Shown in pieces: positions 2 to 64,000 of a DNA stretch of 64,000 bases; position 1 is the stretch's first letter, and the number at the start of each line of letters is the position of its first letter. The position numbers and the translations under genes are program-made. The stretch is taken from IMG/VR virus record IMGVR_UViG_3300027759_006101, positions 186,001 through 250,000 of that record; one strand, 5' to 3'. Below the pieces are notes generated by a model, which was not told where the DNA came from, ran no database searches, and worked only from the letters and a program-made list of their open reading frames with translations.

Positions 2-361
2 TGGTCTTACAGCATCCCACTTAACACCCCAATTATTAAGGTTCCAAGAATACCAGTCATGATAACCTGTTTCCTCGAACGCTTTGATGTTTTGAATAAT
101 CTCTTTAGCACGATGAACAACCCACTCATCATCACAAGTAGCAACTTCCTCTAATGTAAGAAAATTAGTATTCTTGTGCTTATTCACTTCATTGATATAA
201 TCACCTGGAGCAAGATGAGGAGATGATGTTCCCTTTAAAACTTCAGGCATAGGGATGAAGGAGTTGAACAATCCTTCAAGATTGACTTTCTCTTTAAAAA
301 CATTATACTCTTCCTGTGTTTGGAAAATACAGGTGAGTTCGTTCATTACCCAGTTAGGCAT
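2..361 (-). CDS. DUF1281/YubB-like protein, 3'-truncated by window edge (not in ORF track)
   Basis: Hand translation from ATG at 361: MPNWVMNELTC...FNSFIPMPEVL...DWYSWNLNNWGVKWDAVRP. The MPNW start and WY.WN..NWG.KWD motif are typical of this family. Confidence 0.75.
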   Translation of the reverse strand, partial: MPNWVMNELTCIFQTQEEYNVFKEKVNLEGLFNSFIPMPEVLKGTSSPHLAPGDYINEVNKHKNTNFLTLEEVATCDDEWVVHRAKEIIQNIKAFEETGYHDWYSWNLNNWGVKWDAVRP

Positions 362-588
362 CTTTTGGCTTCTTTCTCGTACATCATAAATGTACAGGAT
401 GTTATATCATCTACAACAGTGTATTGCCAGTAATTAAGGGATATATTTCTCTTGTAGAAATTATATCCCTTAAAGCTCTTATGATAGAAATTAAATGTTA
501 CTTGGTCCCACTCTAAGTATTTAATTTCTGCAGCAAGTTGTTTTGCTGCACTAGTCTTCAAAAAATTCTGCATCATCATAGCGCACAT
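346..588 (-). CDS. hypothetical protein
   Basis: ORF in a tightly overlapping - strand run. Confidence 0.5.
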   Translation of the reverse strand: MCAMMMQNFLKTSAAKQLAAEIKYLEWDQVTFNFYHKSFKGYNFYKRNISLNYWQYTVVDDITSCTFMMYEKEAKRCLTG

Positions 589-4983: not shown

Positions 4984-5559
4984 TTATTTCAAAATTACAC
5001 CTAAATCTTTTAAAACTTTCCTCGAAATGTTAGGAAAACCAGTCATAACTATTTTATCACTCTCTAAAGAAAGTTCTATCTCTTGATCGAAAAATAACTC
5101 TTCCTTGGAAATCTTATTAGAGAAGAAATAAAACTCTTGATTAAGGCTACCTCTAAGAGAATCTTCTGTCTTATACTCTTCCTCATACCGTCCATCAATT
5201 AAAACATCTATATACTCTAAACATTTTTCTCTAAGAGGATTTTCTCGGATTTCATTACGAGAAAATCCAGTAAACAATATAATTCCTTTAGGGAGTTTTA
5301 TTTCTTTTAAGAGAAATAAAAGCTCTAACAATTCTCTCTCTTGCTCTAAAGGATCTCCGCCAGATATTGTTATTCCATCTACCTCGAAATTTTTTATTAG
5401 CTCGAAAATTTGTCTAGGAGAAAGTTCTTTATAAACTTCATAGCTCCAAGTCTCAGGATTAAAACAATTCTTACATCCTTTAGAACAACCTTGAGTCCAT
5501 AATACAAATCTTAATCCTGGGCCATTTACTTTACTTAAACAATAACCTCGAATATTCAT
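4984..5559 (-). CDS. radical SAM 4Fe-4S protein, NrdG-like (anaerobic RNR activase family)
   Basis: NGPGLRFVLWTQGCSKGCKNCFN (CxxxCxxC), ISGGDPLEQ, IDGRY and LRGSLNQ motifs. Confidence 0.8.
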   Translation of the reverse strand: MNIRGYCLSKVNGPGLRFVLWTQGCSKGCKNCFNPETWSYEVYKELSPRQIFELIKNFEVDGITISGGDPLEQERELLELLFLLKEIKLPKGIILFTGFSRNEIRENPLREKCLEYIDVLIDGRYEEEYKTEDSLRGSLNQEFYFFSNKISKEELFFDQEIELSLESDKIVMTGFPNISRKVLKDLGVILK

Positions 5560-6767
5560 AGGCTCGAAATCTGTCTCCCCTCTAATGATAAAATGTTGAA
5601 GCTAAATAAGAAAGATATTCTTATGCACTAACATAAGAATATTCTAAAAGAAATAGGCTCGAAAATTTGGCCTCTCTAATTGTTTGGGAGATGAAGGTAA
5701 AGATTTATCTTACATAGAATAATACTTATTACGTCCCAAAATTTATAGTTCAATTTAGATTGTTCTCGCTTTTTCTTAAGAGCCCCGATAACTGAGACCA
5801 ATCTTTCTTCTAGTGTGAACAATCTTTATCTATATTAGACCATTCTTTAATCTAATATTTCTTTTTTTTCTCTATGGTAATAATTATTTTTCTCCCTTAT
5901 TAAAAAGCTCGAAATATATTTTCTTTCTTATATAACAAAAAATAGATCCCTCGAATTTGAAGGATCTATTTCTTTTTTAATAATGGTGTTTTAGGATATG
6001 TATTGTTCTATAATGTGTTAATATATTCCTTCTCTAATAATGTAATAAAAATATTATTCTCCATATAGTCTCCACCCTGTCTCCACTCAACCTCCACTAG
6101 TATTATAATTTTGTAATTATAATATGTGAATAATGTTATAAGGTCTCCACTGTTTTTATATTTTCTTTTTTCTGTAAATTTTTATGCTCAAAAGGTATCA
6201 AAAACTTATATTTGAGGATAAGTCTGTATTAATGCAAGGTAGCTGATTCATTAAAGGAATATGTTTCTTATATGTAGAAGAGACAAAGTCTTTATATAAT
6301 TTTAATAGTGTTTGATATGCTCGAAAATTGTTTTACTCTAATGGTGTTTATAAAAGCTCGAAATATATTGTTGTTTAGTGGTGTATTGTTTTAGTTTGTA
6401 ATATTTCATCTTGGTATAGTAGATTATTAATTATTTTGATTGTTGTTTGTTTTTCTTTAATGGCGAAAAATAATATAATGATGAGAAAGATTAATGTTAT
6501 GTATGGTTTTATGTTTTTCATTATTTGCTCGAAAATGTTTGTTTCTCTAATAGTGTTTTTGAAATTTATATTGTTCATCTATATTGTCTATGATAAATCT
6601 TTCTATATGGAATTTTAAAGATGTTTGTTCTATGTAGTCTAACATTTCTTTTGTTCTCTCTAATGGGTTTTTTAAATTGCTCAGAATATTATATAAGCTT
6701 TTCTACTAATGGGCAAAAAAGAAATGCTCGAAAAGTAGATGGATAATTTAAGTAGAATATATATTGT
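5560..6767. other. ~1.2-kb AT-rich, essentially non-coding region with iterated motifs (candidate origin or packaging control region)
   Basis: Longest gene-poor stretch in the window. Contains 9 CTCGAA and 6 CTCTAA, an 18-bp direct repeat AAAAGCTCGAAATATATT (5903 and 6352), clustered CTCCAC repeats (~6070-6150) and a hairpin AATAGATCC/GGATCTATT (~5941-5970). Confidence 0.55.
6733..6759 (+). promoter_or_regulatory. putative phage late promoter AAG(G/T)-N16/17-TAGAATA
   Basis: AAGT-N16-TAGAATA here and at 46202 (+); AAGG-N17-TAGAATA at 23011-22984 (-); AAGG-N16-TAGAATA at 50390-50364 (-). Confidence 0.5.
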
Positions 6768-7352
6768 ATGGATAAATTATTAAAGGTTGCAAGTTTATTA
6801 GATAATCTTGGTAGTTATGTTTTATCTGATAAGTTATATAAGATTGCTGAATTGTATATTCCTCCTGTTGAATTTTATGAGGGTGTTGACAAGAGGCATT
6901 ATAATGATTACAGGGCTCCGGGAAGTAAATCTTATGATGAGATGATGATTTCTCGAATGAAGAATATGCCTAAGAATTTATCAGGTACAGCCGTTATGGA
7001 TGGCAGTATGTATCGTGACAATCCATATACTCCGAAAGAAATATTAGATATTAGAAAAAAATTAATCCCTACTAATTTCAGGAATGAGATTAGTCGTTAT
7101 GAGAGTGGGGATAGTGTAAGTAACAGTAGTAATCCGAGAAGTTTTGTTACTAGTTTATTTGAGTTTGGTAGAAAGAATGGGATGAATAATTTGACAGCTG
7201 CTTTTGATGCTTATGCTGATAGTGGTGCAACATATAATAATCAGAGTATAAAGAATATCCCTCAATTAAAGAAATTATATATGCAGATAAAATCTAATCC
7301 TCGAATGTTTAGTGAGACAGAAATTGGAGATATGTTGGAAGTTTTGTTTTAA
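6768..7352 (+). CDS. hypothetical putative virion-internal protein with shared helical leader
   Basis: N-terminus MDKLLKVASLLDNLGSYVLSDKLYKIAE. Confidence 0.7.
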   Translation: MDKLLKVASLLDNLGSYVLSDKLYKIAELYIPPVEFYEGVDKRHYNDYRAPGSKSYDEMMISRMKNMPKNLSGTAVMDGSMYRDNPYTPKEILDIRKKLIPTNFRNEISRYESGDSVSNSSNPRSFVTSLFEFGRKNGMNNLTAAFDAYADSGATYNNQSIKNIPQLKKLYMQIKSNPRMFSETEIGDMLEVLF

Positions 7353-7354
7353 AG

Positions 7355-7391
7355 AAAAAAATCCCTCGAATCTTTAATCGGGGGATTTTTT
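7355..7391. terminator. bidirectional terminator with CTCGAA in the stem/loop
   Basis: AAAAAAATCCC...GGGATTTTTT between convergent genes. Confidence 0.75.
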
Positions 7392-9150
7392 ATTTAATTA
7401 TTTGTTTTATTTTATATGCTGCTTTTGTATATATGCCTGGGTTTACAGTTTCAGGAGTGGATGTGTAATTTGGCACGTATTGTTCTGAGAGTAATCTTAA
7501 AACAAAATCCTGAAATTGTTCTTCAAAATCAGCTGCCTTACGTCTTGCAAAAAAGGGAATTCTTTTAATTGGTATTGAGAAATAATTTGCAAAGTTGTTT
7601 TTAATTTGATCAGAAACAATTTTATTTGTAATATCCATCTCTGTGTTTGGTCTTGCGTAATAATGATCACTTCCATCAAATTCTAAAATATATTGAATTC
7701 TTTTACTACTGTCTAAAACAACAGCATCAAAAGAATATGATAGTGGATCAAAATTATTATTATTCAAAAAGATAGAATAAGAATCTGCAAAACCATCTTT
7801 ATTAGGTGTGTAAGTTGTACATTTCCATTTAGTGCAGGATCTCATTTCATCATTTGCAGTTTCTGCACACTCTAGCTCAAACTCATATAATTTTTTATCT
7901 TCGAAATCTGGATCTTCAGGTGTAAGATTTTTTCTATACGACCAGCCATCTTTTACTTCTGGGATTTTTTCAAATTCAGTGTTAGATAAATTGAAGCAAT
8001 GGATAGTTTTTCCATTTCTTTCGATTACTGTTTTATGTGATTTTATGCTACTAAAGAGATAAGTAAAAATGTCTTTGTTTCTATCTTTTTTGATTTGTGT
8101 TTCAACAAACTCTTCGAATCTGGGATCGAGTTTACATAGAAATCCTTGCTTAAAAAATAAATTTTGTGGAAGTATATTTTGAGTAAGATTGGTTTGTTGA
8201 ATGTTAAAAAAAACTTTATCACCAAGACTTGATGTTGGCTCTCTTTTATCAATGATCAATTCTTCGTAAACAGTTTTTAAATCACTATTAAATGGATCTC
8301 TTAATTGTCTGAGTGATAATATATGATAATTTTCATTGTTGAAATTATATATTGATATTTCTTTATTATTGATATCTATAATTTTATCATATTTTTGTTC
8401 TACAGATATTTTATATGTTCTTTCAGTAATGTCTTTTGGTAGTGTTCTTAGGAAACTTTCCCAAGCAATAGGATTTTCTCTGAATGATAAAACTTTTGGA
8501 TTCATTTCATTCCTAAAGATATTTAATTGTTGTTTGTCTAGAGCATTAAGATTGCTTTTAGATTTTAATTGATACCACACATCATTAAAATAATATTGTT
8601 TTGGCAAACCTTCATATACTGTTTCAGAAAATCTATTTGATATTATATTTTTATTTTTCATATCTCTTAAAATATTTAAGAATGTTTGAGCATCAGGAGT
8701 TATAAAGTCAATTCTGTATTTATTATTTATTTCATAATCAGGATAACGTATATTTTTATTGTTTTTTCTAATAAAAGGTATAGGTTGCACTCCGAGTTGT
8801 GCATATGCATTTTGTATTATATCTAAATTTGGAAGATCTTTTAATAAGGGTTTTCCAATTCTTAGTATTAAAGTATTATTTTGTCCAGGTTCTGTGTTTA
8901 TATCAGCAAAATAATGTGGTGAAGAAGAATAAAATTGTGTAAGTTGAGTTGCTTTTTCTTGAGATAATCTTTCAATAAAAATTTGTTTACTTGCAAATTT
9001 AGTTTTTGATAGTAAAGTTATGTGATCTTTTGTATCTTTTAATAAATTGTTAAATTCTTCTGGGGATAGATCATTGACTGAAATAGGAGCTGGCATATCG
9101 TATTGAACGATTTTGCTTTTTGGCATTCTTATCTTGATTCTATAATACAT
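7390..9150 (-). CDS. large hypothetical protein with C-terminal Vsr/DUF559-like PD-(D/E)XK nuclease domain
   Basis: C-terminal SFDAVVLD...ILEFDGSDHY...DQIKNNFA...IPIKRIPF pattern. Confidence 0.6.
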   Translation of the reverse strand: MYYRIKIRMPKSKIVQYDMPAPISVNDLSPEEFNNLLKDTKDHITLLSKTKFASKQIFIERLSQEKATQLTQFYSSSPHYFADINTEPGQNNTLILRIGKPLLKDLPNLDIIQNAYAQLGVQPIPFIRKNNKNIRYPDYEINNKYRIDFITPDAQTFLNILRDMKNKNIISNRFSETVYEGLPKQYYFNDVWYQLKSKSNLNALDKQQLNIFRNEMNPKVLSFRENPIAWESFLRTLPKDITERTYKISVEQKYDKIIDINNKEISIYNFNNENYHILSLRQLRDPFNSDLKTVYEELIIDKREPTSSLGDKVFFNIQQTNLTQNILPQNLFFKQGFLCKLDPRFEEFVETQIKKDRNKDIFTYLFSSIKSHKTVIERNGKTIHCFNLSNTEFEKIPEVKDGWSYRKNLTPEDPDFEDKKLYEFELECAETANDEMRSCTKWKCTTYTPNKDGFADSYSIFLNNNNFDPLSYSFDAVVLDSSKRIQYILEFDGSDHYYARPNTEMDITNKIVSDQIKNNFANYFSIPIKRIPFFARRKAADFEEQFQDFVLRLLSEQYVPNYTSTPETVNPGIYTKAAYKIKQIIK

Positions 9151-9232
9151 TTCATAAGTTTTATACGTTATGATGTACTGCTATCCCTCGAAAAAGTGGG
9201 AGATTTTTCTTTTTAAGTAGAATAAATATAGT

Positions 9233-53779: not shown

Positions 53780-54592
53780 CTCTGCAATCAATACTTCTGT
53801 TTTATTCTTAGTCAACGAAGCAGCAATAACTCTTCCTGTAGCATCAACAATTTGAGAATGTCCTTGAAAATATAGGGGAAACATCCATCCAGCACAATAT
53901 GGCCTGACTATTGTAAAACCATTTTCTTTAGCCCTTTGTATCTGAGGAGTTTCTTTATTGTAATCAAAAGGATATCCTGGGAAAGGGCGCCATCCATTAG
54001 AAGGAGCAAATAAAATTACTGCTCCTTCTTTTTTAAATTTACTAATATAATAAGCATCATTTAAGTCGTAACAAACACATAGCCCTACTTCACCAAATCT
54101 TGTCTCTAAAACAATAGGCTCGTATTGTGTTTGTAATCTAAGAGCTTTTTCAAATCCAACAAGATATTTTTTTGAAGCTTTGCCTACAACATCTCCATTA
54201 GAATCTATTAGTGTCTGAGAGTTATAAATACCATCATATCTTTTTTCATAATATGTTCCTGAAACTATATGAACATTATATTTTTTTGCAAGATTTGACA
54301 TAGTTTGCAAAATAATTTTTTCTTGATTTTTGATATTAAACAATCTTAAAATAAAAGATAAATCTAACTTTGAAATAACTTTATCAAATAAAGATTCAAA
54401 ATTATTTTTGATGTTTAGTGATGATATTTTTTCTTGCTTTGCAAACAATAAACAATAATTTATATTTTCTGGGAAGCATATAATATCAGGTTTTATAAGC
54501 AAATTTTCAAAAACTTGTTTTTCTATGTAATATTGAAAAGATTTTTGAGAAAAACAATATTTAAGATTAAGTTGAACAGAAGCAACTTTCAT
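53768..54592 (-). CDS. nitrilase/carbon-nitrogen hydrolase family protein
   Basis: E-K-C triad: ICFPEN, ASKKYL and GLCVCYDL; GHSQIVDATG. Confidence 0.85.
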   Translation of the reverse strand: MKVASVQLNLKYCFSQKSFQYYIEKQVFENLLIKPDIICFPENINYCLLFAKQEKISSLNIKNNFESLFDKVISKLDLSFILRLFNIKNQEKIILQTMSNLAKKYNVHIVSGTYYEKRYDGIYNSQTLIDSNGDVVGKASKKYLVGFEKALRLQTQYEPIVLETRFGEVGLCVCYDLNDAYYISKFKKEGAVILFAPSNGWRPFPGYPFDYNKETPQIQRAKENGFTIVRPYCAGWMFPLYFQGHSQIVDATGRVIAASLTKNKTEVLIAELVR

Positions 54593-56115
54593 TAGGTGTT
54601 TATAACTCTTCGTCTAAAGTAAAAGTCTTCGTCTCTTATGGCTAAAAACCAACCGTATCTAGCGCCATTAGCAAGAGTTGTATAGGTTACTGTAAAACCA
54701 TTTTCTCCAGTAAAGTTTTGTATATCACCTACTGCTTGAAGCGTTGGAGTTGTAGCAGTAAAACTCACAATACCATTAGTAGAAACTCTTCCTCTCATTG
54801 CATCATTTCCGTTAGTGTTGTTGTCAACGTTTCCATAAGATAAAGAAAATTGTTGCGATTTTTGAAATTCATACGTTGCACTTGTTACAGTCGTAGTAGC
54901 ATTAGATTGTAAAAGAAGTGCTGTATTAGAAGTAATTGAACTAACAACTCCAACAAGACGAAAATTGCTATCATACAAAGTGTCTGTGGCACCTAACTCT
55001 GAAAGAAAAGATGTGCCTGTACCACTTACAGAAGTATTAGCCGTGTTAGATGTAATAGTACCTGTTCCTGTAATGTTTTTTCCACCCAAACCATTTGCTG
55101 TAAAAAATGACATCACTTCACAACCATTATTAGCTGCTGTGTTTGTAGTGTTGAGAGTATTGGAGTGAGAAAAACAACCCAATACATGACAGGGCTTGAA
55201 TCCAACACCATAAGAGCTTGATGTTGTAGCAGTGCCCGTTGGAGATTGGAATGTTCCAGCTGCAAAAGATGGATCCAAAGTACGACCAAAACCAGCAGTC
55301 ATAGCTAAAAAAATTATTGAGTGTCCAGTATTCGCTGAACTTTGTGTCACTGCAAAACCAGTATCAAACATTGTTTGAAATTTAACACTTGATGTTGAAG
55401 CTAAAGTCAAGCTGCCATCGTCAGAGATTCTTGTTGTTACTGCGCTATTACCACCACCATCGTCTACATTCCTCCAGATAGCACCTACTTGAGATGTAAC
55501 AAAAGAACCGCCCGTAGAAGCTATTCTTACAGCTGCTCCAAAATGTAATTGCCCATCTGTTGTTTGAGCAGGACGTATATGAGAATATAAAATAGCATCT
55601 GGCTGAAATGTTGTTCCCACGACCGTTCTTGTATTTGCTGGAGGTGGAACTACGGTTTGTCCAACTGCACAAGTGAAGTCATCTCCTGCAAAAACTGTAA
55701 ATACTGCATCTAATGGTGTTTGCTGAGTGCCAACACCTTGATATGTGCCTAAAATAGTATCTTGAGCAAATCCTGTTAGCTGCCACTGTCTTCTGATAGT
55801 CTGTGCAGTATTTGTTGTAAATATTGAAACTGTATTACCGAAACTTGCTCTACTTACTACAGGGTCTGCAGCTTCCTCATTGCTTGTCCAAACGCAAGCA
55901 TTTGTAAGACCTGTACCTGCTATATTACTACCACCAAAACCAACTGAAAAACAAGGAAAGTCAGTAGTAGAATCAAAGTTATCAGGTTGTACAAAATTAT
56001 CTTGAGCGTAAACTAAGTAACCTTTAGGAACTCCAAATCCTGTTGGCAAACTAATGTTAAATGTACCACTTGCTTGAGCTGCAGGTATTCTGACAGATAC
56101 AATTCGAGTTTTCAT
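54592..56115 (-). CDS. putative tail/baseplate structural protein
   Basis: T/G/S-rich beta protein; SGTGTSFLSELG segment; coupled upstream of the nitrilase. Confidence 0.65.
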   Translation of the reverse strand: MKTRIVSVRIPAAQASGTFNISLPTGFGVPKGYLVYAQDNFVQPDNFDSTTDFPCFSVGFGGSNIAGTGLTNACVWTSNEEAADPVVSRASFGNTVSIFTTNTAQTIRRQWQLTGFAQDTILGTYQGVGTQQTPLDAVFTVFAGDDFTCAVGQTVVPPPANTRTVVGTTFQPDAILYSHIRPAQTTDGQLHFGAAVRIASTGGSFVTSQVGAIWRNVDDGGGNSAVTTRISDDGSLTLASTSSVKFQTMFDTGFAVTQSSANTGHSIIFLAMTAGFGRTLDPSFAAGTFQSPTGTATTSSSYGVGFKPCHVLGCFSHSNTLNTTNTAANNGCEVMSFFTANGLGGKNITGTGTITSNTANTSVSGTGTSFLSELGATDTLYDSNFRLVGVVSSITSNTALLLQSNATTTVTSATYEFQKSQQFSLSYGNVDNNTNGNDAMRGRVSTNGIVSFTATTPTLQAVGDIQNFTGENGFTVTYTTLANGARYGWFLAIRDEDFYFRRRVINT

Positions 56116-56132
56116 AATATTATTATAAAAAA

Positions 56133-59100
56133 TTAAACTTCGTTTAATGTAAATGACACTGAGAAGTTGGCGTGAGTAGCATTCAATAAATTAAAGTTCA
56201 ATCTCAAAAGATTTCCTGAAGTTACAAAAGTGCCTGCTACAAATGTGTTAGTTGTAGTCACATAAATGCCTGCACCAGAAAGGGTCAAACCTGAACCTCC
56301 AATTAAACTTGACCCTGTAGCAGCAAGAGTAAATGCTCCAGTGTCGGTCGAAGATCTTTCAAGTTGAATTCTTGAAGAGCCAGCAGATGGTGTTTCTACC
56401 CTTACATTAAATTCAGTAAGTATGAAAGTTTGCTTCGTAGCACCATCTTCAGAAGAGTCAGGTATTAGGTAAATTATGTTATCTGGACCGGCTGCCAAAG
56501 GTGTATATCCTGCTGCCATCCAAACATGGTGCTCCATTTTATTTCTTAGAACAACACGATTGCCTGTAACAGATGTAGTTGCTAATCCACCCTCCAGAGG
56601 GGCAAAGAACATATTTCCAGATGTATCAACTAATATTGTTGAATATCCATTACCGACAGGAGCTGTAGGTAAAGATAATGTATAGTTTGTAGCAACATTC
56701 GAAGCTTGAATAGCAGCGTATCGTGAGTTGTCAGCATTAAAAAATCTTACATCATTCTGCGCTCTCAAATCAAAGTTTGTAAATACAGAAATTGCAGTGC
56801 CAGCTTCGTGAATGTATATAGTGTCTGTAGCACCATTATTGACGGCAAATCTTATTGGGTGAGATGTTGTAGTACCCAAAACTAATGGCCCACTTGTAGC
56901 AGCCAAATAAGTTGCATTTGGCGCAAATAAGGCTCCTGAACCAGTAAAGGTACTAGAGTTCATACCAATTTCACCATAATTTGCAGCGTCTGTGCTTATA
57001 TCATTATTGACAACTAAATTGGCTGATGCACTAGTACCATTAGATTTATTTTGAATGACAAGTTGATTATATGAGTTGACAGTAGAAACAAATGAAGCTA
57101 GATTATTAGGAATGTTATAGCTTGGGGTTGTTCCTACAGATAAAGTAGTACCAACAAATAAACTCTTTGCAATTCCAGCCCCACCGTCAACTTGAAATGC
57201 GCCTGTTGTTGTAGATGTAGACTCTGTAGTATGAGTAATTTCTACTACTCCAGTTGAAGTATTGTTTGTAAATGTATTAGAACCAGAAACTGAAGCACCA
57301 GTTCCTGCATAATATGCTACTGAATATTGAGCATTAGGAATTGCTACTGTTCCTGAACCTGCTCCAGAAGAGCCACCTGATGGTGCAGCCACCCAAGCCA
57401 TAACTCCAGTGGTACTTGCAGACAAAAAGGATGTTCCAGTTCCAGAAGGGTAAGCAAGCGGAAGAGTATACGTCAAATTGGCTGCTTGTGAAGCGCTTGT
57501 TGTCAGTGTGTTGTTATTTGTTCGTGTTGCATATGAAGAGCTAGTAATGGTAAGGTCTGCAACTGTGGTTTTGCCAACATAATCCACTTTGAAAACTGAA
57601 AGATTAGATGGAGGTGAACCATTATCAAATTTTGCATCAATAAAGTTATATTGAGCTCCATTCAATGATGTATTACTCAGGGCTAAAAGTGTTCCAGTTG
57701 CAGAACCTGTAAAGTTTACAGAGTTATTTTCTCCTATCAATAATGCAAAATTTGTTGAACTGCCAGTGTTATAATTTATGGTTTTCAACATTCCAGTAGC
57801 GTTTGCATAATTGAAAGTCGATGACGCAGCAAAATTTCCAGTGCCAGAATTATATTGAACATCGCCAACAGACCCTGAAGGGGATCCACCACCACCACCA
57901 GCAGGAGCAGCCACCCAAGCCATAACACCAGCTTGTGTAGATGTCAAGAATGAAGCTCCAGCACTAGAAGGGGATGTTGGTGGAAGTATATATGTAGTGT
58001 TAACTCCAGACTGAGCGCTTGCAAATGCAGTATATAAACTACCGTTGAACATTTGTAATCTGCCACCAATGCTGACAGACAATCCAATTCCAACTCCACC
58101 TGTCGCTATTAAACCACCTACTCCAGGAGTTGTGGAATTGATATTTGACTCAAAGCGAGAAGCATCACCAACGTAAAGACTTCCACCAATCCCAGCTCCT
58201 CCTGTGACAGTTAAAGCCCCAGTTCCATTTGATATTGCTGCAATTGAAGAAGAAAATCTTGAAGCACCCGCAACATACAAACTCCCACCTATGCCAACTC
58301 CACCAATTGCTTGCAGAGCTCCAGTAGTAGTATTAATTGCTGCTGCCGTTCCAACTACTGTTATTGCTGTCCCTGCAGAAATTCCTACTGCAGCAAATGT
58401 TCCTCTTGCTGGATTTATTTGGATGGTATTTACAGTTGATAATCCTAAGCCTGTACCTGATGCTGCAGATATTACTGTTGGATAAAAGACTGCATCAACA
58501 ACGGTACTGCTAACTGCTACTGAGGATGCTGCTGAAGGAGGGACTGCAGCCCATATAGGTGCTGTACCCGGACCTTGGGCAGTCAGAACTTGATTTGTTG
58601 AACCAGAGGGAAGTTTACCTAATGATGTCGCAGTTGCAGCATATAATATATCCCCAACTGCATATGTATTAAATCCAGTACCACCGTAGAATGATGTGAT
58701 AGTGGAACCAGACCAAGTTCCTACAGTTACTAATCCATTATTTAGAACTACACCTGAAATGCTTGATGGAACTGATGTGCTAGTAAATACTGAACCACCA
58801 ATACCAACACCACCAGTTACTGTCAATGCTCCAGTTCCTGAACTTATGGATGAAGCGCTAGAGGTAAATCTTGAAGCTCCTCCAGCAAATACGGACCCAC
58901 CAATGCCTACTCCCCCAGTTACAACTAGAGCTCCACTGCCCACATCTATGGCAGCTGTAGTGGCTTCAAACTCGGATGGTAATGCTACATTTAAACTTCC
59001 GCCGATTCCAACGCCACCAGTGACTGTTAGTGCCCCGGTGCCTGAATTTAAAGATGCAATACTAGAAGTAAATCTAGAGGCTTCGCCTACATATAATGAA

Positions 59101-61544
59101 CCAGCAATTCCAGCTCCACCTGTCACGGTCAATGCCCCAGTTCCAATAGAAATTGCTGTGGCAGTTGAGGAGAACCTGGATGCTCCTCCTGCATTTATGC
59201 TTCCCCCAATTCCTACTCCACCAGTTACCACCAATGCGCCAGATCCAACATTTATTGAAGCTACCGATGATTCAAACTGTGAAGCAGATGCTACATACAA
59301 GCTTCCACCGATACCCACACCACCAGACACTGTAAGTGCTCCAGTTCCAGAAGATGATGCAACATTAGTGGCAGAGAATCTCGAAGCACTTCCTACAAAT
59401 AATGAGCCACCAATACCAACTCCTCCTATTACTTGTAGCGCCCCAGTAGTTGTGCTTGATGCTACTGCATTGCCTACTACAGTTATGGCAGTTCCAGCAG
59501 ATATACCAACTGCTGCAAAAGTTCCTCTAGCAGGGTTAATCTGAATAAAAGGAACTGTAGATAAACCTAATCCAGCGCCTGATACAGCGGACACTACGGT
59601 TGGATAAAAAACTTGATCTAATACGGTACTGATGACTGCTACCGATGATGCTGCAGATGCTGGCACTGCTACCCAAGTTACACCAGAAGGCGATGTAGCG
59701 CTGGCTGTTAGGACAAAATTATCTGAGCCAACTCCCTGTCTTATAAATGTATTACCAAAACCTACTAAAATATCGCCTTTTGTGTATGTGTTAAATCCGG
59801 TACCACCGTAAAAGGCCGTTATAGTTGAACCTGCCCAAGTCCCTTGATTCACCACACCCTGTATTACAGACAATCCCGAAATACTTGCACCAATTCCACC
59901 AACATACAAGCTTCCACCAATACCCACACCGCCAGACACTGTAAGTGCTCCTGTAGCAGAAGTTGTTGATACTGTAGCGTGAGATATATTTACTACACCA
60001 GTTGAAGTGTTGTTTGTAAACGTAGCAGAACCTGAAACAGAGGCGCCAGTTCCAGCATAATAAGCTACTGAGTGTTGAGCATTTGGAATTGCTACTGTAC
60101 CCGAACCAGCTCCAGAAGATGAAGATGCCACCATAGGAACCCAAGACATTACACCTTCCGCTGTTGATTGTAAAACTGATGATCCTGTAGCGGGAGTTGT
60201 TGCAGGAAGCGTATAAACTGTATTTCCTGTTCCTGAACTTACAAATGCTGTTACATTTGCTCCATTAAGTAATTGTAATCTGCCTGCCACACTAATTGAT
60301 TTTGCAAATCCAGCTCCGCCTGAAACTACTAAGCCACCTGTCGTAGATGATATAGAATTGTCAGTTGAATTGAACGTAGCTTTTCCTGTTGCTGCACCAA
60401 TATTCATTGCAGTAGCGGCACCAAATGCATTTATGGTTGTTGCATTTGTATTAAAAACAGCAAAAGTTGCGTCACCTGTAGTGACTCCTGTACCAAATGA
60501 AGGTTGAGTATTGAAGACTAAAACGCCTGAACCTGTTTCATCAGTTATTGCACTAAGTATTGCTGACGAGGTGGTTGAGGCAGAAACAGTACCAGAAGAT
60601 ATGGTCAATACACCAGAGGAAGAACCTAAGTTTTGCCCAGTTCCGCCATAAGTAGTAGATATAGCAGTACCGTTCCAAGTCCCTCTAGTTATTGTTGAAT
60701 TTGAAAAAGTGACGCCAGTTATACTTGCGCCAATACCTCCAACATACAAACTTCCGCCAATACCGACACCACCCGTGACTTTGAAGGCTCCGGTACTAGA
60801 ATCTGTTGCAACTGTAGCATGTGTAATACTTACTACACCTGTAACAGTGTTATTAGTAAAGGTATTAGATCCTATAACAGAAAGTCCAGTGCCAGGATAA
60901 TAGGCCATTTCATATTGGCCACCTTGTCCTACTCCAGCAGTGCTTCCTGTGCCTCCAGACCCAGTAGCAGTTGCCCAAGTAAGTGTAGCTGAACCGTTTG
61001 TTTGTAAAAATTGACCTGATGAACCATCTGTTGTTGGAAGCGTATATGTTATGTTTGTCGCAGCGTTAGATTTAAAGCCTGTGTAAAAAGTATTTCCAGA
61101 ATTATAAAGTAGTAAAGAATTTGCTGACCGTATTGATAAACTATTACTTCCTGATACTGCTGAATTACTAAAAATAAAATTATATAAACCATCATTGGAA
61201 GAAGCTAAACCAAAACTTCCCTTAAGATCTAATTTATATATAGGATTTGTTTGTCCAATTCCTACAATACCGCCATAAACTGCAAGGCCAACAGTTCCAC
61301 CAGCACTTGAAGACAATAATGGAACACCAGAAATATCTGACACAGCCCAGATTGTTCCTGAAGATAAGTTAGAGTCAATAGAAAAAACTTGTCCTTCATT
61401 ACTTGTGAAAGAAAGTGTATTATCATCTAAAACTTCAAGAGTAATAACTGATGAGCCAGCAGCAGAACCAGTAAAGACAATATTAGGATAAGTTGTCTTA
61501 TTTTTACTAGTTGTGATTCTTATATTTTTATCGGAGTTTGCCAT
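56133..61544 (-). CDS. giant Gly/Thr/Ser-rich tail fibre protein with GAL.V.GGVGIGGS repeats
   Basis: Tandem 34-aa repeats, duplicated modules and repeated YTLP...G.M.WV hinges. Confidence 0.8.
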   Translation of the reverse strand: MANSDKNIRITTSKNKTTYPNIVFTGSAAGSSVITLEVLDDNTLSFTSNEGQVFSIDSNLSSGTIWAVSDISGVPLLSSSAGGTVGLAVYGGIVGIGQTNPIYKLDLKGSFGLASSNDGLYNFIFSNSAVSGSNSLSIRSANSLLLYNSGNTFYTGFKSNAATNITYTLPTTDGSSGQFLQTNGSATLTWATATGSGGTGSTAGVGQGGQYEMAYYPGTGLSVIGSNTFTNNTVTGVVSITHATVATDSSTGAFKVTGGVGIGGSLYVGGIGASITGVTFSNSTITRGTWNGTAISTTYGGTGQNLGSSSGVLTISSGTVSASTTSSAILSAITDETGSGVLVFNTQPSFGTGVTTGDATFAVFNTNATTINAFGAATAMNIGAATGKATFNSTDNSISSTTGGLVVSGGAGFAKSISVAGRLQLLNGANVTAFVSSGTGNTVYTLPATTPATGSSVLQSTAEGVMSWVPMVASSSSGAGSGTVAIPNAQHSVAYYAGTGASVSGSATFTNNTSTGVVNISHATVSTTSATGALTVSGGVGIGGSLYVGGIGASISGLSVIQGVVNQGTWAGSTITAFYGGTGFNTYTKGDILVGFGNTFIRQGVGSDNFVLTASATSPSGVTWVAVPASAASSVAVISTVLDQVFYPTVVSAVSGAGLGLSTVPFIQINPARGTFAAVGISAGTAITVVGNAVASSTTTGALQVIGGVGIGGSLFVGSASRFSATNVASSSGTGALTVSGGVGIGGSLYVASASQFESSVASINVGSGALVVTGGVGIGGSINAGGASRFSSTATAISIGTGALTVTGGAGIAGSLYVGEASRFTSSIASLNSGTGALTVTGGVGIGGSLNVALPSEFEATTAAIDVGSGALVVTGGVGIGGSVFAGGASRFTSSASSISSGTGALTVTGGVGIGGSVFTSTSVPSSISGVVLNNGLVTVGTWSGSTITSFYGGTGFNTYAVGDILYAATATSLGKLPSGSTNQVLTAQGPGTAPIWAAVPPSAASSVAVSSTVVDAVFYPTVISAASGTGLGLSTVNTIQINPARGTFAAVGISAGTAITVVGTAAAINTTTGALQAIGGVGIGGSLYVAGASRFSSSIAAISNGTGALTVTGGAGIGGSLYVGDASRFESNINSTTPGVGGLIATGGVGIGLSVSIGGRLQMFNGSLYTAFASAQSGVNTTYILPPTSPSSAGASFLTSTQAGVMAWVAAPAGGGGGSPSGSVGDVQYNSGTGNFAASSTFNYANATGMLKTINYNTGSSTNFALLIGENNSVNFTGSATGTLLALSNTSLNGAQYNFIDAKFDNGSPPSNLSVFKVDYVGKTTVADLTITSSSYATRTNNNTLTTSASQAANLTYTLPLAYPSGTGTSFLSASTTGVMAWVAAPSGGSSGAGSGTVAIPNAQYSVAYYAGTGASVSGSNTFTNNTSTGVVEITHTTESTSTTTGAFQVDGGAGIAKSLFVGTTLSVGTTPSYNIPNNLASFVSTVNSYNQLVIQNKSNGTSASANLVVNNDISTDAANYGEIGMNSSTFTGSGALFAPNATYLAATSGPLVLGTTTSHPIRFAVNNGATDTIYIHEAGTAISVFTNFDLRAQNDVRFFNADNSRYAAIQASNVATNYTLSLPTAPVGNGYSTILVDTSGNMFFAPLEGGLATTSVTGNRVVLRNKMEHHVWMAAGYTPLAAGPDNIIYLIPDSSEDGATKQTFILTEFNVRVETPSAGSSRIQLERSSTDTGAFTLAATGSSLIGGSGLTLSGAGIYVTTTNTFVAGTFVTSGNLLRLNFNLLNATHANFSVSFTLNEV

Positions 61545-61587
61545 AGGAGTATCTATATATTATTATAAAAAAATGAGCCTTAATCTT

Positions 61588-62256
61588 TTATGGTAATCTG
61601 AATCTACCTTTCATTGCATCGTAATGTTGTTTAACTTGTAAATCGGATAATGCATCACCTATATTCAACCAAATAAAACCAATAGCACCATCACAGCCAA
61701 TATAGTCAAACACTTTAGAGTCTCCAGAACCTGTACCATTAGCGCTTAATCCAGTGAATGTAGTAAAAACAGAACCATTTACATACATAGTAGCAGCGGT
61801 ACCAGAACGTGTATATGCATAGTGTCGCCAAACATCATCTGTCATACCAAGTCCAGAGGTAGTAAAATCAACATTATGATGTCTCATAGTTACCTGGCCA
61901 GCAGCATTATGGCTAAATGTCAAAACATTGGATTGAATCTGCATAATTGTAGAATCAGTCCCTGTCTGTGCTACTTTATAAGAAAAAAATAAAGTATACT
62001 TATCACTAGTCTCGTTTCCAACTTGTTCTATTCTTTGCGAGAATTGTTGCTTGCTTGTTTGCTTGACATATTTTGAAACTCCCGAGCCAGCAATTAAATT
62101 CGTGGTGTTTGTCATAGTCCAATCTGTATATCCTCTGAATCTAAAAGGATTATTAAATGTAAATCCAGTTCCAGGGTACAAAACATTACTAGATGGGTCT
62201 AAAATATTATCAAATGTTTCCCAATATGGAACATTGGGGCCGCCTTTTACTCCCAT
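61588..62256 (-). CDS. LamG/ConA-like domain virion protein
   Basis: WRHYAYTRSG...MYVNG...ALS..QVKQHYDAMKGRF. Confidence 0.75.
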   Translation of the reverse strand: MGVKGGPNVPYWETFDNILDPSSNVLYPGTGFTFNNPFRFRGYTDWTMTNTTNLIAGSGVSKYVKQTSKQQFSQRIEQVGNETSDKYTLFFSYKVAQTGTDSTIMQIQSNVLTFSHNAAGQVTMRHHNVDFTTSGLGMTDDVWRHYAYTRSGTAATMYVNGSVFTTFTGLSANGTGSGDSKVFDYIGCDGAIGFIWLNIGDALSDLQVKQHYDAMKGRFRLP

Positions 62257-63521
62257 TATGGTAATCCAAATCTATTTTTAATAGAATTATATTGTGTAGA
62301 TATTTCTGTTGCCGTAAGCGCTCTGTTATATATTTGACAAAAACCAATATTGGCAGTAATTCCAGCATTGGAGCCGGAATCTGACTTTTCCATAAAAAAT
62401 CTGAATCTGGAAGTAGAATCATAAGTCATATCCGATGTGTCTGTTAAATTAGCACTATTTTCAGCAGATGTTCCAACAGCAGCACCATTAAAATAAATCT
62501 TAAATGCGCTTTCTACTCCTGCAATTGTTGTTGGAGGTGTGCCAGTATAAGTTATAGCGTAATGAAGCCAACGTCTATGATAAAGAGAATATCTTGTAAC
62601 ACCACCGGGATTTGTTCCTTGTGAATATCCAAAATCAAGATTGTCAGACAGATTACCCTTACCAGCATTCCAATGAGTGATGCTTGATCCTGTTGCTGGA
62701 AACCAAGAAGCGCTAAAATTGTATAGGTTATTTCTCCAACCATTATTTCCAATTATAATTGGGCCTGTCAAAACTGTACTGCCTGTAGAAGTTTGTAAAT
62801 CTGCTTTTAACTGCGATATATAAGGAACGAATCTATAAGTAGTAGATTTTTGAAGAGGGAAAATTGTAGCTGATGATGTGAATTCAAAAATATTACTATT
62901 TTGCCAAGTTAATATATATGTTTGCCCAAAACTTGATGTAGCACTTGTAGAAACAAAAGGTCCAGCTTGTCCACTAAAATATGTTTGTCCATAGTCTCCC
63001 CAAGATATAGCAGTTCCAGCATAGACCCTTCTGCCACCAAAAAATAAATCATTAGCAAGAACAAAAGTTAATTTAGTTGAAGATTCAGGATATAAAGCCC
63101 ATCCTTTATTATTGACAAATCCATTGACCATAAATCCAGATCTATATTCATTAGAATTATTCGCCCATTGCAAGACACAAATTACTGTAAACGGAGTGCT
63201 ATTATTCAATTCAAATGTAGAATCTTTAATTTCTCTTTCTGTTGTTTGTTGTGTATATGCTCCAGAAATAAATGATTTTGGAGGGTTTCTAATCAAAGGA
63301 GCAGTCCAAGCATCAGTTGCACCAGACAAATGAAATGACTGCATTAATTGATTGGGATTTATAGTGGATGAATATTTTTGCATACTAACACCTAATCCAC
63401 TTCCTAAATCAACGTATTGAAAAATTCTTTGAGAACTTGCATCAAATTCAAAGGTCAAGTTACTAGAAAAGTCTTGCCCTCTATTTTCACTTAATTTTCT
63501 TTGTCCAACTTTACTTCCCAT
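62256..63521 (-). CDS. LamG/ConA-like domain virion protein
   Basis: LTFEFDAS; WLHYAITY...IYFNG...IYNRALT..EI..QYN.IKNRFG. Confidence 0.75.
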   Translation of the reverse strand: MGSKVGQRKLSENRGQDFSSNLTFEFDASSQRIFQYVDLGSGLGVSMQKYSSTINPNQLMQSFHLSGATDAWTAPLIRNPPKSFISGAYTQQTTEREIKDSTFELNNSTPFTVICVLQWANNSNEYRSGFMVNGFVNNKGWALYPESSTKLTFVLANDLFFGGRRVYAGTAISWGDYGQTYFSGQAGPFVSTSATSSFGQTYILTWQNSNIFEFTSSATIFPLQKSTTYRFVPYISQLKADLQTSTGSTVLTGPIIIGNNGWRNNLYNFSASWFPATGSSITHWNAGKGNLSDNLDFGYSQGTNPGGVTRYSLYHRRWLHYAITYTGTPPTTIAGVESAFKIYFNGAAVGTSAENSANLTDTSDMTYDSTSRFRFFMEKSDSGSNAGITANIGFCQIYNRALTATEISTQYNSIKNRFGLP

Positions 63522-64000
63522 TATGTTAGCCCAAACCTACTTTTTAAGGCATTATAATTTTTAGCGTGTTCAGCAGCAGAAAGTTGTCTATTGTATAAGA
63601 GGCACATAGCAATTCTCCCTTGAAAATCTCTTACTGCCCCACTATACCCTTCTGTCCCTAAAAAATATGTAAATGATGCCGGAAATGTTGTTTGATTAGT
63701 TCTATAAGCACCTAATATATTCCACCCATTTACTAAAGATGCACCATCAGCTACTGCTGAACCATTAACATAATAAGTAGTACCAGGATTTCCCCAGTCA
63801 TCACCATTAAGACCTGCTGACGCTCTAACAGTCCAAGGACCAGTGCCATTTGCATTATTAAATCTCATACTTTTATCTGTATTTGTAGTGTCATTTGAAG
63901 CTGCTATCAGACCTACCAATGCTGCATTACTGTTCAGTGCAAAATCAGGGTAAAATACAATAGTACAATCTAAATATTGTTGAGACAAAGTTGATGAAAT
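63521..64000 (-). CDS. LamG-like domain virion protein, 5'-truncated by window edge
   Basis: Frame is open to base 64000; C-terminus LYNRQLS..EH.KNYNALKSRFG. Confidence 0.7.
   Translation of the reverse strand: MSSTLSQQYLDCTIVFYPDFALNSNAALVGLIAASNDTTNTDKSMRFNNANGTGPWTVRASAGLNGDDWGNPGTTYYVNGSAVADGASLVNGWNILGAYRTNQTTFPASFTYFLGTEGYSGAVRDFQGRIAMCLLYNRQLSAAEHAKNYNALKSRFGLT

Follow-up and report, generated by a model that had tools for sequence, protein, structure and literature searches.

What is the 1.2-kb gap at positions 5560-6767 of this phage sequence, and why is it so rich in short repeats? The window analysed is a 64,000-nucleotide stretch comprising bases 186,001-250,000 of the IMG/VR virus record IMGVR_UViG_3300027759_006101, a single contig of 358,269 bp with 33.7% GC, which is classed as linear and is rated 89% complete by CheckV. 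Near-identical sequence is present in freshwater and lake metagenome runs and the contig represents an uncultured jumbo phage. Nothing in the public phage records is close to it: blastn of positions 5000-8000 and tblastn of a 586-aa ORF gave no match, and the NrdG-like protein encoded beside the gap hit only relatives with less than 40% identity. The first-pass annotation, made from the sequence alone, described the gap as a non-coding region with bipartite CTCGAA-N10/11-CTCTAA sites and iterons, and proposed a candidate origin or packaging control region where head-to-tail half-sites would be bound cooperatively by an initiator, a terminase small subunit or a partition protein.

We first examined whether the repeats are present and whether they exceed chance. 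The observation holds in full, as every element described was found at its position. The bipartite pattern is located on the + strand at 5563-5585 (N11, directly upstream of the nrdG-like start codon), 5658-5679 (N10), 6320-6341 (CTCGAA-N10-CTCTAA(TGGTGTTT)), 6528-6550 (CTCGAA-N11-CTCTAA(TAGTGTTT)) and, inside a - strand gene, at 2095-2116. These 5 matches compare with 0.02 expected from 100 dinucleotide shuffles, and none is present on the - strand. The annotation had named chance spacing at the local motif density as a possible refutation; with 9 CTCGAA and 6 CTCTAA in 1.2 kb, we estimate that four pairs at this spacing have a chance of about 1e-6. The exact 18-mer AAAAGCTCGAAATATATT is present at 5903-5920 and 6352-6369, and ATAGGCTCGAAA at 5558 and 5653. 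The hairpin is a 28-nt imperfect palindrome at 5928-5983 with CTCGAA at its tip, has a DNA fold with z = -3.1 and looks like a bidirectional terminator. GC skew flips from -0.25 (5801-6200) to +0.43 (6201-6600) and GC content falls to 23-26%.

The gap, which we refer to as the hub, is an AT-rich intergenic region between two divergent genes. The leftward gene (4984-5559, - strand) encodes a radical-SAM activase of the NrdG type (Fer4_12 plus Radical_SAM), carries 4 CTCGAA copies and borders the hub in all relatives, while the rightward gene (6768-7352, + strand) is an unknown ORF of 194 aa. Contrary to the annotation, the region is not wholly non-coding. Positions 6547-6645 on the - strand hold a 32-aa truncated remnant of a small gene, whose stop is overlapped by the CTCTAA of the unit at 6528-6550, and which is intact in strain variants (86-87 aa, 75% identical to each other). 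The right third of the hub is therefore partly decayed coding DNA, and the hub is also the point where co-occurring strains diverge. ORF 6375-6578 has no detectable conservation and no similarity to the small gene of the variants, and was rejected as a real gene. Rfam covariance models gave no match at gathering score in the window and only chance-level hits (E 0.4-0.6) in the hub, and a tRNA scan of the window found nothing.

The hub carries a separate set of repeats. CTCCAC is present at 6070, 6081, 6092 and 6145, the first three forming (G)TCTCCAC iterons with an 11-bp period at 6068-6097 (+), and relatives have 1-5 copies at the same place. The fourth GTCTCCAC iteron, at 6143-6150 (+), lies on the other side of the best sigma-70-like match of the hub (6102-6130, - strand, pointing left; TTCACA-17-TATAAT, 11 of 12, a consensus match only), so that the array brackets this site. 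A second promoter-like sequence, ATGAAG-18-TAGAAT, is located at 5691-5720 (+) and reads TTGCAG-18-TAGAAT in relatives. Four of the five relatives checked have it (the relative labelled L010 does not), and in L009, L002 and L013, as in the window's own genome, it lies 79-92 nt upstream of a CCCCGAT block. In the window this block is the core (at 5783) of AGCCCCGATAA at 5781-5791 (+); it is present in L002, L009, L010 and L013 but not in L012. The GTCTCCAC array looks like an operator, iteron or centromere-type element in its own right, and we regard it, together with the promoter-like sites, as a local control element separate from CTCGAA.

Is CTCGAA then a property of the hub? It is not. In the window it occurs 38 times on the + strand between 74 and 11,547 and never on the - strand there (44 in the window against 15 expected, a count reached in no shuffle). 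In the whole contig, 53 + strand copies lie in 175,020-197,547, against 1.4 expected per strand, with no - strand copy, while the other 335 kb hold only 12 + and 29 - copies. The next base is A or T in 52 of 54 copies, the 7-mer CTCGAAW having 52 copies against about 0.8 expected per strand, and no further flanking consensus exists. An additional copy at genome 173,077 lies in a tRNA T-arm and was not counted. In an unbiased k-mer comparison CTCGAA(W) is by far the most enriched and most asymmetric word of the block; CTCTAA(T) is a weaker second polar word (31:4) and other one-base variants are not enriched. The domain starts at window -10,980, has a dense block from window -949 to 5560, and is interrupted by a 6.5-kb motif-free island at genome 178,552-185,051, which holds a GHKL-ATPase protein, a DUF932 protein and small ORFs. 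No other region of the contig has a comparable single-word cluster; enrichments at 240-280 kb involve many different words in one block, presumed to be repetitive coding sequence. A restriction-site reading was rejected, since TCGA is not avoided genome-wide (observed/expected 0.92) and avoidance cannot explain enrichment.

The orientation of the word does not follow that of the genes. Pooled over six genomes, density is 1.8 per kb in + strand genes, 2.0 per kb in - strand genes and 3.4 per kb in non-coding DNA. All three reading frames are used, and several copies sit in terminator loops, including the bidirectional terminator hairpin at 7356-7391, which carries CTCGAA in its stem and loop. 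A promoter, a terminator or an RNA signal would follow gene orientation, and RNA-level readings (RNase tag, terminator, antisense promoter) were therefore rejected. Chance, or a compositional, codon-usage or recent-duplication artefact, can be effectively excluded. TTC-GAG (Phe-Glu) in frame accounts for half of the copies in - strand genes, and some hub units are 29-31-nt repeats with 72-74% identity, but the orientation is the same in genes of both strands and in non-coding DNA, the word is nearly absent from the other 335 kb, which have the same codon usage, and it is conserved across diverged relatives.

Spacing of the copies was examined across the clade. CTCGAA copies are never closer than 14 bp, and gaps of 14-19 bp are in excess (12 against 5 expected for CTCGAA, 25 against 8.4 when CTCTAA is included), the bipartite sites being the local form of this close pairing. 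Such spacing is expected for a protein footprint and cooperative head-to-tail pairs, and it is conceivable, though unlikely, that the word is a static binding site for a phage partition, silencing or compaction protein or for an activator of the T4 MotA type. The bipartite units, far beyond chance in number, would then be promoters with an activator box about 10-11 bp upstream of a -10-like TCTAAT, a geometry that resembles T4 middle promoters, and two + strand genes (6768 and 9233) have a copy 41-46 nt upstream of the ATG. However, static binding does not need one orientation, yet the reverse orientation is absent in over 200 copies, most of them antisense inside - strand genes. No conserved second element follows the word in general, and the bipartite form is kept only in close strains and is rare or absent in the more distant motif-bearing relatives L009 and L013. 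It is therefore a local variant and not the functional unit.

Relatives were found through the NrdG-like and UvdE proteins. Those labelled G001, G002, G003, L009, L010 and L013/L014 have NrdG identity of 44-63%, and all carry the same word in the same orientation relative to these genes in the syntenic block: G001 36:0, L009 46:0, L010 26:0 and L013 24:0, and over whole contigs G002 43:1 and G003 45:7, with all seven opposite-strand copies of G003 outside the domain. Strain variants have 14-35 copies against 0-1. In G003 the domain reaches 30 kb in patches, and its copies spaced by roughly 100 nt are not tRNAs. About 70 more distant NrdG-bearing phage loci show nothing of the kind. A partial scan of viral contigs for three closely spaced CTCGAA copies returned tandem repeats and chance hits. 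Against G001 (72% nucleotide identity), 20 of 37 sites in the dense part are kept in place, compared with 28-31% for background hexamers, while other sites are lost in one genome and gained in the other with density kept. The word is therefore maintained by selection on both presence and density.

The hub marks the edge of this domain. Where the retrieved DNA reaches well beyond it (L010, L012 and L013/L014; 3.4 kb in L009), the last copies lie 90-930 bp beyond the nrdG start, inside the equivalent AT-rich gap, and nothing follows for the next 6-10 kb (about 3 kb in L009). The window's own genome has a further 16 copies over 6 kb, and its closest relative G001 has 7 in the 1.4 kb before its contig ends. 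Pooled over 6 genomes, density is 5.5 per kb in the kb left of the nrdG start, 3.8 per kb in the first kb of the hub and about 0-1 per kb further right, falling to about zero within 1-2 kb, whereas to the left it declines slowly to 1.4-2.5 per kb at 5-10 kb.

These results bear on the proposed binding proteins and on the origin. The interpretation of the first-pass annotation is partly supported. The hub is a special control region with a layout conserved in relatives and with helically phased iterons around a promoter-like site, and it lies beside a depth step and contig break (described below), so an origin or a packaging or terminus region remains possible. However, CTCGAA is not an iteron of this region, since about 80% of the copies lie outside the gap, inside genes of both orientations over 7-30 kb and strictly on one strand, which a static initiator, terminase small subunit or partition protein does not need. 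In an origin reading, which we consider unlikely, the polar word would serve leftward, unidirectional replication from the hub as preferred priming or helicase-loading sites on one template strand, or would protect a rolling-circle tail. The hub is the most AT-rich stretch of the first 12 kb of the window, the part profiled, and it has phased iterons, promoter-like sites, a skew flip and a conserved layout, beside a one-sided motif domain that decays with distance. Nevertheless, the skew flip coincides with a change in gene orientation, the genome-wide cumulative skew shows no origin signature here, and no initiator, helicase or primase gene adjoins the hub. The GTCTCCAC iterons are clustered in AT-rich DNA as in an iteron origin, but no initiator gene was found. 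Known primase sites are 3-5 nt long and genome-wide, and the hub is strain-variable and partly a decayed gene. A packaging site is not supported, as the motif spans 7-30 kb rather than a few hundred bp, the flanking genes are a radical-SAM activase and unknown ORFs, and Terminase_6N gave no match in the contig. Similarly, none of the 20 flanking ORFs scanned against Pfam matched a partition ATPase or GTPase, and CTCGAA copies are dispersed, not tandem.

Does a DNA end lie at the hub? In assembled contigs of four independent runs, a break is located at 5482-5511 and mean word depth is about two-fold (1.8-2.4x) higher on the left side: 42.9 against 23.5, 33.3 against 14.6, 53 against 29.2 and, in the run labelled X4, 15-19 against 7.6 with the step at 5924-5930. 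These are contig means and not read-level depths. Independent assemblies also end at 5450-5511 or 5894-5930, and five of seven longer public contigs end at window 12-568, positions which bracket the dense block. This is what a collapsed terminal repeat of about 5-6.5 kb would give. However, co-occurring strains that share the left block explain it equally well, because the left contigs are interrupted by bubbles, variant right-hand contexts exist in other samples and the step moves in X4. We consider a repeat possible, but somewhat less likely than not. At the right limit of the motif (window 9.5-15.4 kb) contig depth is flat and long contigs span it, indicating no boundary there.

The motif block might be a long terminal repeat or first-entering segment of the T5, SPO1 or CBB style, where the word would be read by the phage's own packaging or ejection machinery, for example to slow or stop the translocating terminase before the terminal cut, as lambda cosQ does, or to pace DNA entry. 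The depth step, the contig ends on both sides of the dense block, the sharp edge with a rise towards the hub, a polarity that fits a motor moving in one direction, and an identical word across a clade with NrdG identity down to 44%, which fits a co-inherited phage reader, are in favour of this view. On the other hand, no terminase or ejection system is known to use dozens of dispersed 7-mers, the depth step has the strain-mixture explanation, the motif continues 1-6 kb beyond the step in the window's own genome and in G001, block length varies from about 7 to 30 kb between relatives, and depth does not change at the right-hand limit at about 11.5 kb. We regard it as rather unlikely. A target for a phage enzyme that nicks one strand only, as in T5-type virion DNA, is less likely still. 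The word is strictly on one strand, and a GIY-YIG-type (T5orf172) gene and a PD-(D/E)XK nuclease gene lie at the right edge of the domain. But these genes are in the strain-variable part and are not shown to be kept with the motif, T5 nicks are spread over the genome and not confined to a domain, and over-representation inside genes would be costly without a benefit.

Absolute polarity, a one-sided and slowly decaying profile and a sharp edge together point to a DNA-level signal for a machine that starts at the hub, or arrives there, and moves along the DNA reading one strand. Our preferred, though tentative, hypothesis is a Chi-like array beside a DNA end. In this view an end would be made or exposed at the hub (a genome terminus, a packaging cut or the edge of a terminal redundancy), and a helicase-nuclease of the RecBCD/AddAB type would enter there, travel leftwards, meet 5'-CTCGAAW-3' on the 3'-ended (+) strand from its 3' side, stop degrading and hand the end to a recombinase, which would protect the end and promote joining of redundant ends into circles or concatemers. 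The phage encodes a RecA/UvsX-like protein (406 aa, E = 2e-43) but has no PDDEXK_1 or UvrD-helicase match. What our analysis establishes is the strict one-strand polarity, the independence from gene orientation, the conservation, the asymmetric density profile and the boundary at the hub; that a DNA end lies at the hub, which enzyme reads the word, and that a RecBCD/AddAB-type enzyme responds to it are inferred.

Several points count against this hypothesis. The word is not G-rich as known Chi sequences are, its density of up to 5-6 per kb is about ten times that of known phage Chi arrays, this phage has its own recombinase whereas the precedent phages lack recombination genes, and sixteen copies lie right of the depth step in the window's own genome. 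A host Chi would be over-represented and replication-skewed in the host chromosome. A scan of 201 genomes of one bacterial phylum, that of a MAG that carries a phage-like contig and not an established host phylum, showed no clear over-representation of the word in any genome; seeming runs of hits on one strand reflected only the order of listing, and direct counts in the two genomes inspected showed no special skew, with 21:7 (G080), in line with its gene-strand bias, and 35:26 (G039). A UvdE-based search of bacterial genomes returned only short phage-like contigs binned into a Saccharibacteria MAG and a Kapaibacterium MAG, which is not host evidence. It is also possible, although less likely than not by a wide margin, that the word is no borrowed host signal but a phage-specific polar code marking one terminal or first-entering genome domain, read by a machine encoded by this clade such as its terminase or ejection apparatus, or a nuclease or helicase that tells phage DNA ends from host DNA. 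No phage is known to use such a system.

Strictly one-strand words that ignore gene orientation are rare and, where they are understood (Chi, KOPS, SRS), they reveal how a moving enzyme reads a genome. Here a whole clade of uncultured freshwater jumbo phages keeps such a word at up to 5-6 copies per kb in one block with a sharp edge. If it is a Chi-like array, it gives the recognition sequence of a helicase-nuclease of an unknown freshwater host, which would be a handle for host assignment from sequence alone, and it would extend the recently described terminal Chi cluster strategy from small lambdoid phages to jumbo phages. If the reader is phage-encoded, it would be a new kind of genome-end or packaging code. 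In either case the motif is a simple sequence marker for finding the physical ends and the replication or packaging logic of jumbo phages known only from metagenomes.

Among known systems, the closest are the co-oriented host Chi sites clustered at one genome end in phages LLS (20:3) and MD8 (32:0), and the genome of P1, which has 50 Chi sites and needs RecBCD/RecA to recombine its terminal repeats (PMC12315714). They share with our domain a short asymmetric word, nearly all copies in one orientation, concentrated towards one part of the genome, in all frames and with site turnover, and are interpreted as a signal for an enzyme entering from a DNA end, which protects the end and recombines redundant ends. 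In that study the lack of a recombination module and of a RecBCD inhibitor in the phage is a correlate of such arrays. Our word differs in sequence and has no known reading enzyme or host, its density is 2-6 per kb against about 0.5 per kb, and it occupies an internal 7-30-kb block of a contig whose ends are unknown. The long terminal repeats and first-step-transfer region of T5, and the terminal repeats of SPO1 and of the Rak2-like jumbo phage CBB, are likewise blocks covering a few percent of the genome that are treated differently from the rest, with depth possibly 2x here and a complex repeat-rich non-coding region at the inner edge. However, no dispersed one-strand heptamer has been described for those repeats, the repeat status here is unproven, and the gene content here (nucleotide metabolism, DNA repair, methyltransferases, tRNAs) is not a typical host-takeover set. 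KOPS (FtsK) and SRS (SpoIIIE) are 7-8-bp words with extreme, gene-independent orientation bias read by a moving motor, but they span whole replichores at about 1 per 10 kb and flip at the origin and at dif, whereas here there is a single short domain without a flip, and no FtsK-like reader was identified. For the GTCTCCAC array only, and not for CTCGAA, the 11-bp period, the bracketed promoter-like site, the AT-rich setting and the conservation in relatives resemble iteron origins and parC-type centromeres such as R1 parC, with its 11-bp repeats flanking a promoter, although there are only 4 copies and no rep, parM, parA or tubZ gene is adjacent. Finally, the SRL/SRR arrays of T7 are co-oriented 7-bp repeats of unknown function adjacent to a genome terminus, but they comprise about 12 copies within a few hundred bp of non-coding DNA, not dozens embedded in genes over many kb.

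A small gene of 86–87 amino acids in length, starting with MLDYIEQTSLKFHIERF, is intact in strain variants (L090:7011–7271 and L093:2169–2432) while it is cut to 32 aa in the present genome (window 6547–6645, − strand). The stop of the truncated gene lies in the CTCTAA of the bipartite unit at window 6528–6550. Comparison of window 5560–9200 with the loci L090, L092, L093 and L096 revealed that strains sharing the block to the left of the intergenic hub at 88–98% identity carry different genes to the right of it, where the 194-aa and 353-aa ORFs are replaced by ORFs of 232–292 aa. The hub is a recombination or mosaic breakpoint.

Two promoter-like sites in the hub face a shared palindromic terminator (window 5691–5983 on the + strand and 6130–5940 on the − strand). 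As judged from sequence alone, these could give a roughly 250-nt + strand RNA containing the conserved CCCCGAT block and a roughly 150-nt − strand RNA that would start with three or four GUGGAG repeats. No Rfam match was found for these putative transcripts. The sequence TTAAGTAGAATA precedes the ATG of both the + strand genes (6768 and 9233), at window 6746–6767 and 9213–9232, and is kept in the relative G001 as TAAGTAGTATATATATTGTATG. It may be a promoter or a leaderless start signal. Each of these two genes also has a CTCGAA copy 41–46 nt upstream of the ATG. A further promoter-like element is seen genome-wide, upstream of about 34 ORFs, where GTATAA(T/A) is enriched 8-fold within 60 nt upstream of long ORFs, often as GGTATAAT. 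It looks like an extended −10-type or phage-specific promoter element.

Inside the motif domain, a 6.5-kb island (L001:12552–19051, genome 178,552–185,051) has no CTCGAA at all. The island encodes a 718-aa GHKL-ATPase protein, a 438-aa DUF932 protein and small ORFs, and the same gap exists in G001. It is possible that the island is a later insertion or a defence/anti-defence island.

Short contigs (L099, CAZPCB010000006.1, and L100, JALRHN010000086.1; G005:C45) carrying the UvdE gene of this phage clade and the polar motif (16:0 and 6:0) are binned in a Candidatus Saccharibacteria MAG and a Candidatus Kapaibacterium MAG. These are probably phage DNA mis-binned into bacterial bins, and are at best a weak hint of co-abundance.

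Local enrichment of other words is seen elsewhere in the genome. At genome 240–280 kb (window 54,000–64,000 and beyond), many strand-biased 6–7-mers (CCAGAA, ACCAGT, CTGTTAC and others) are locally enriched on a stretch where long − strand ORFs predominate, and we speculate that these are repeat-rich large genes, possibly structural or fibre genes. At genome 145–160 kb, CCCCCC occurs 12 times on one strand within 10 kb against 0.1 expected.

In the whole contig, with the window included, CGCG is completely absent from 358 kb (0 against about 88 expected), while CATG is at 0.16 of expectation and GATC at 0.59, which looks like strong restriction-site avoidance. At the left edge of the motif domain (L001:7852–9139, genome 173,852–175,139), an IceA-family endonuclease gene sits next to an N6/N4 DNA methylase gene. 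In strain variant L094 the same pair sits at another place, after the Ogg-like gene, and therefore appears to be a mobile cassette. IceA1 is a CATG-cutting enzyme of the NlaIII type and, on this basis, the phage would carry a CATG restriction-modification pair, which would match its CATG avoidance.
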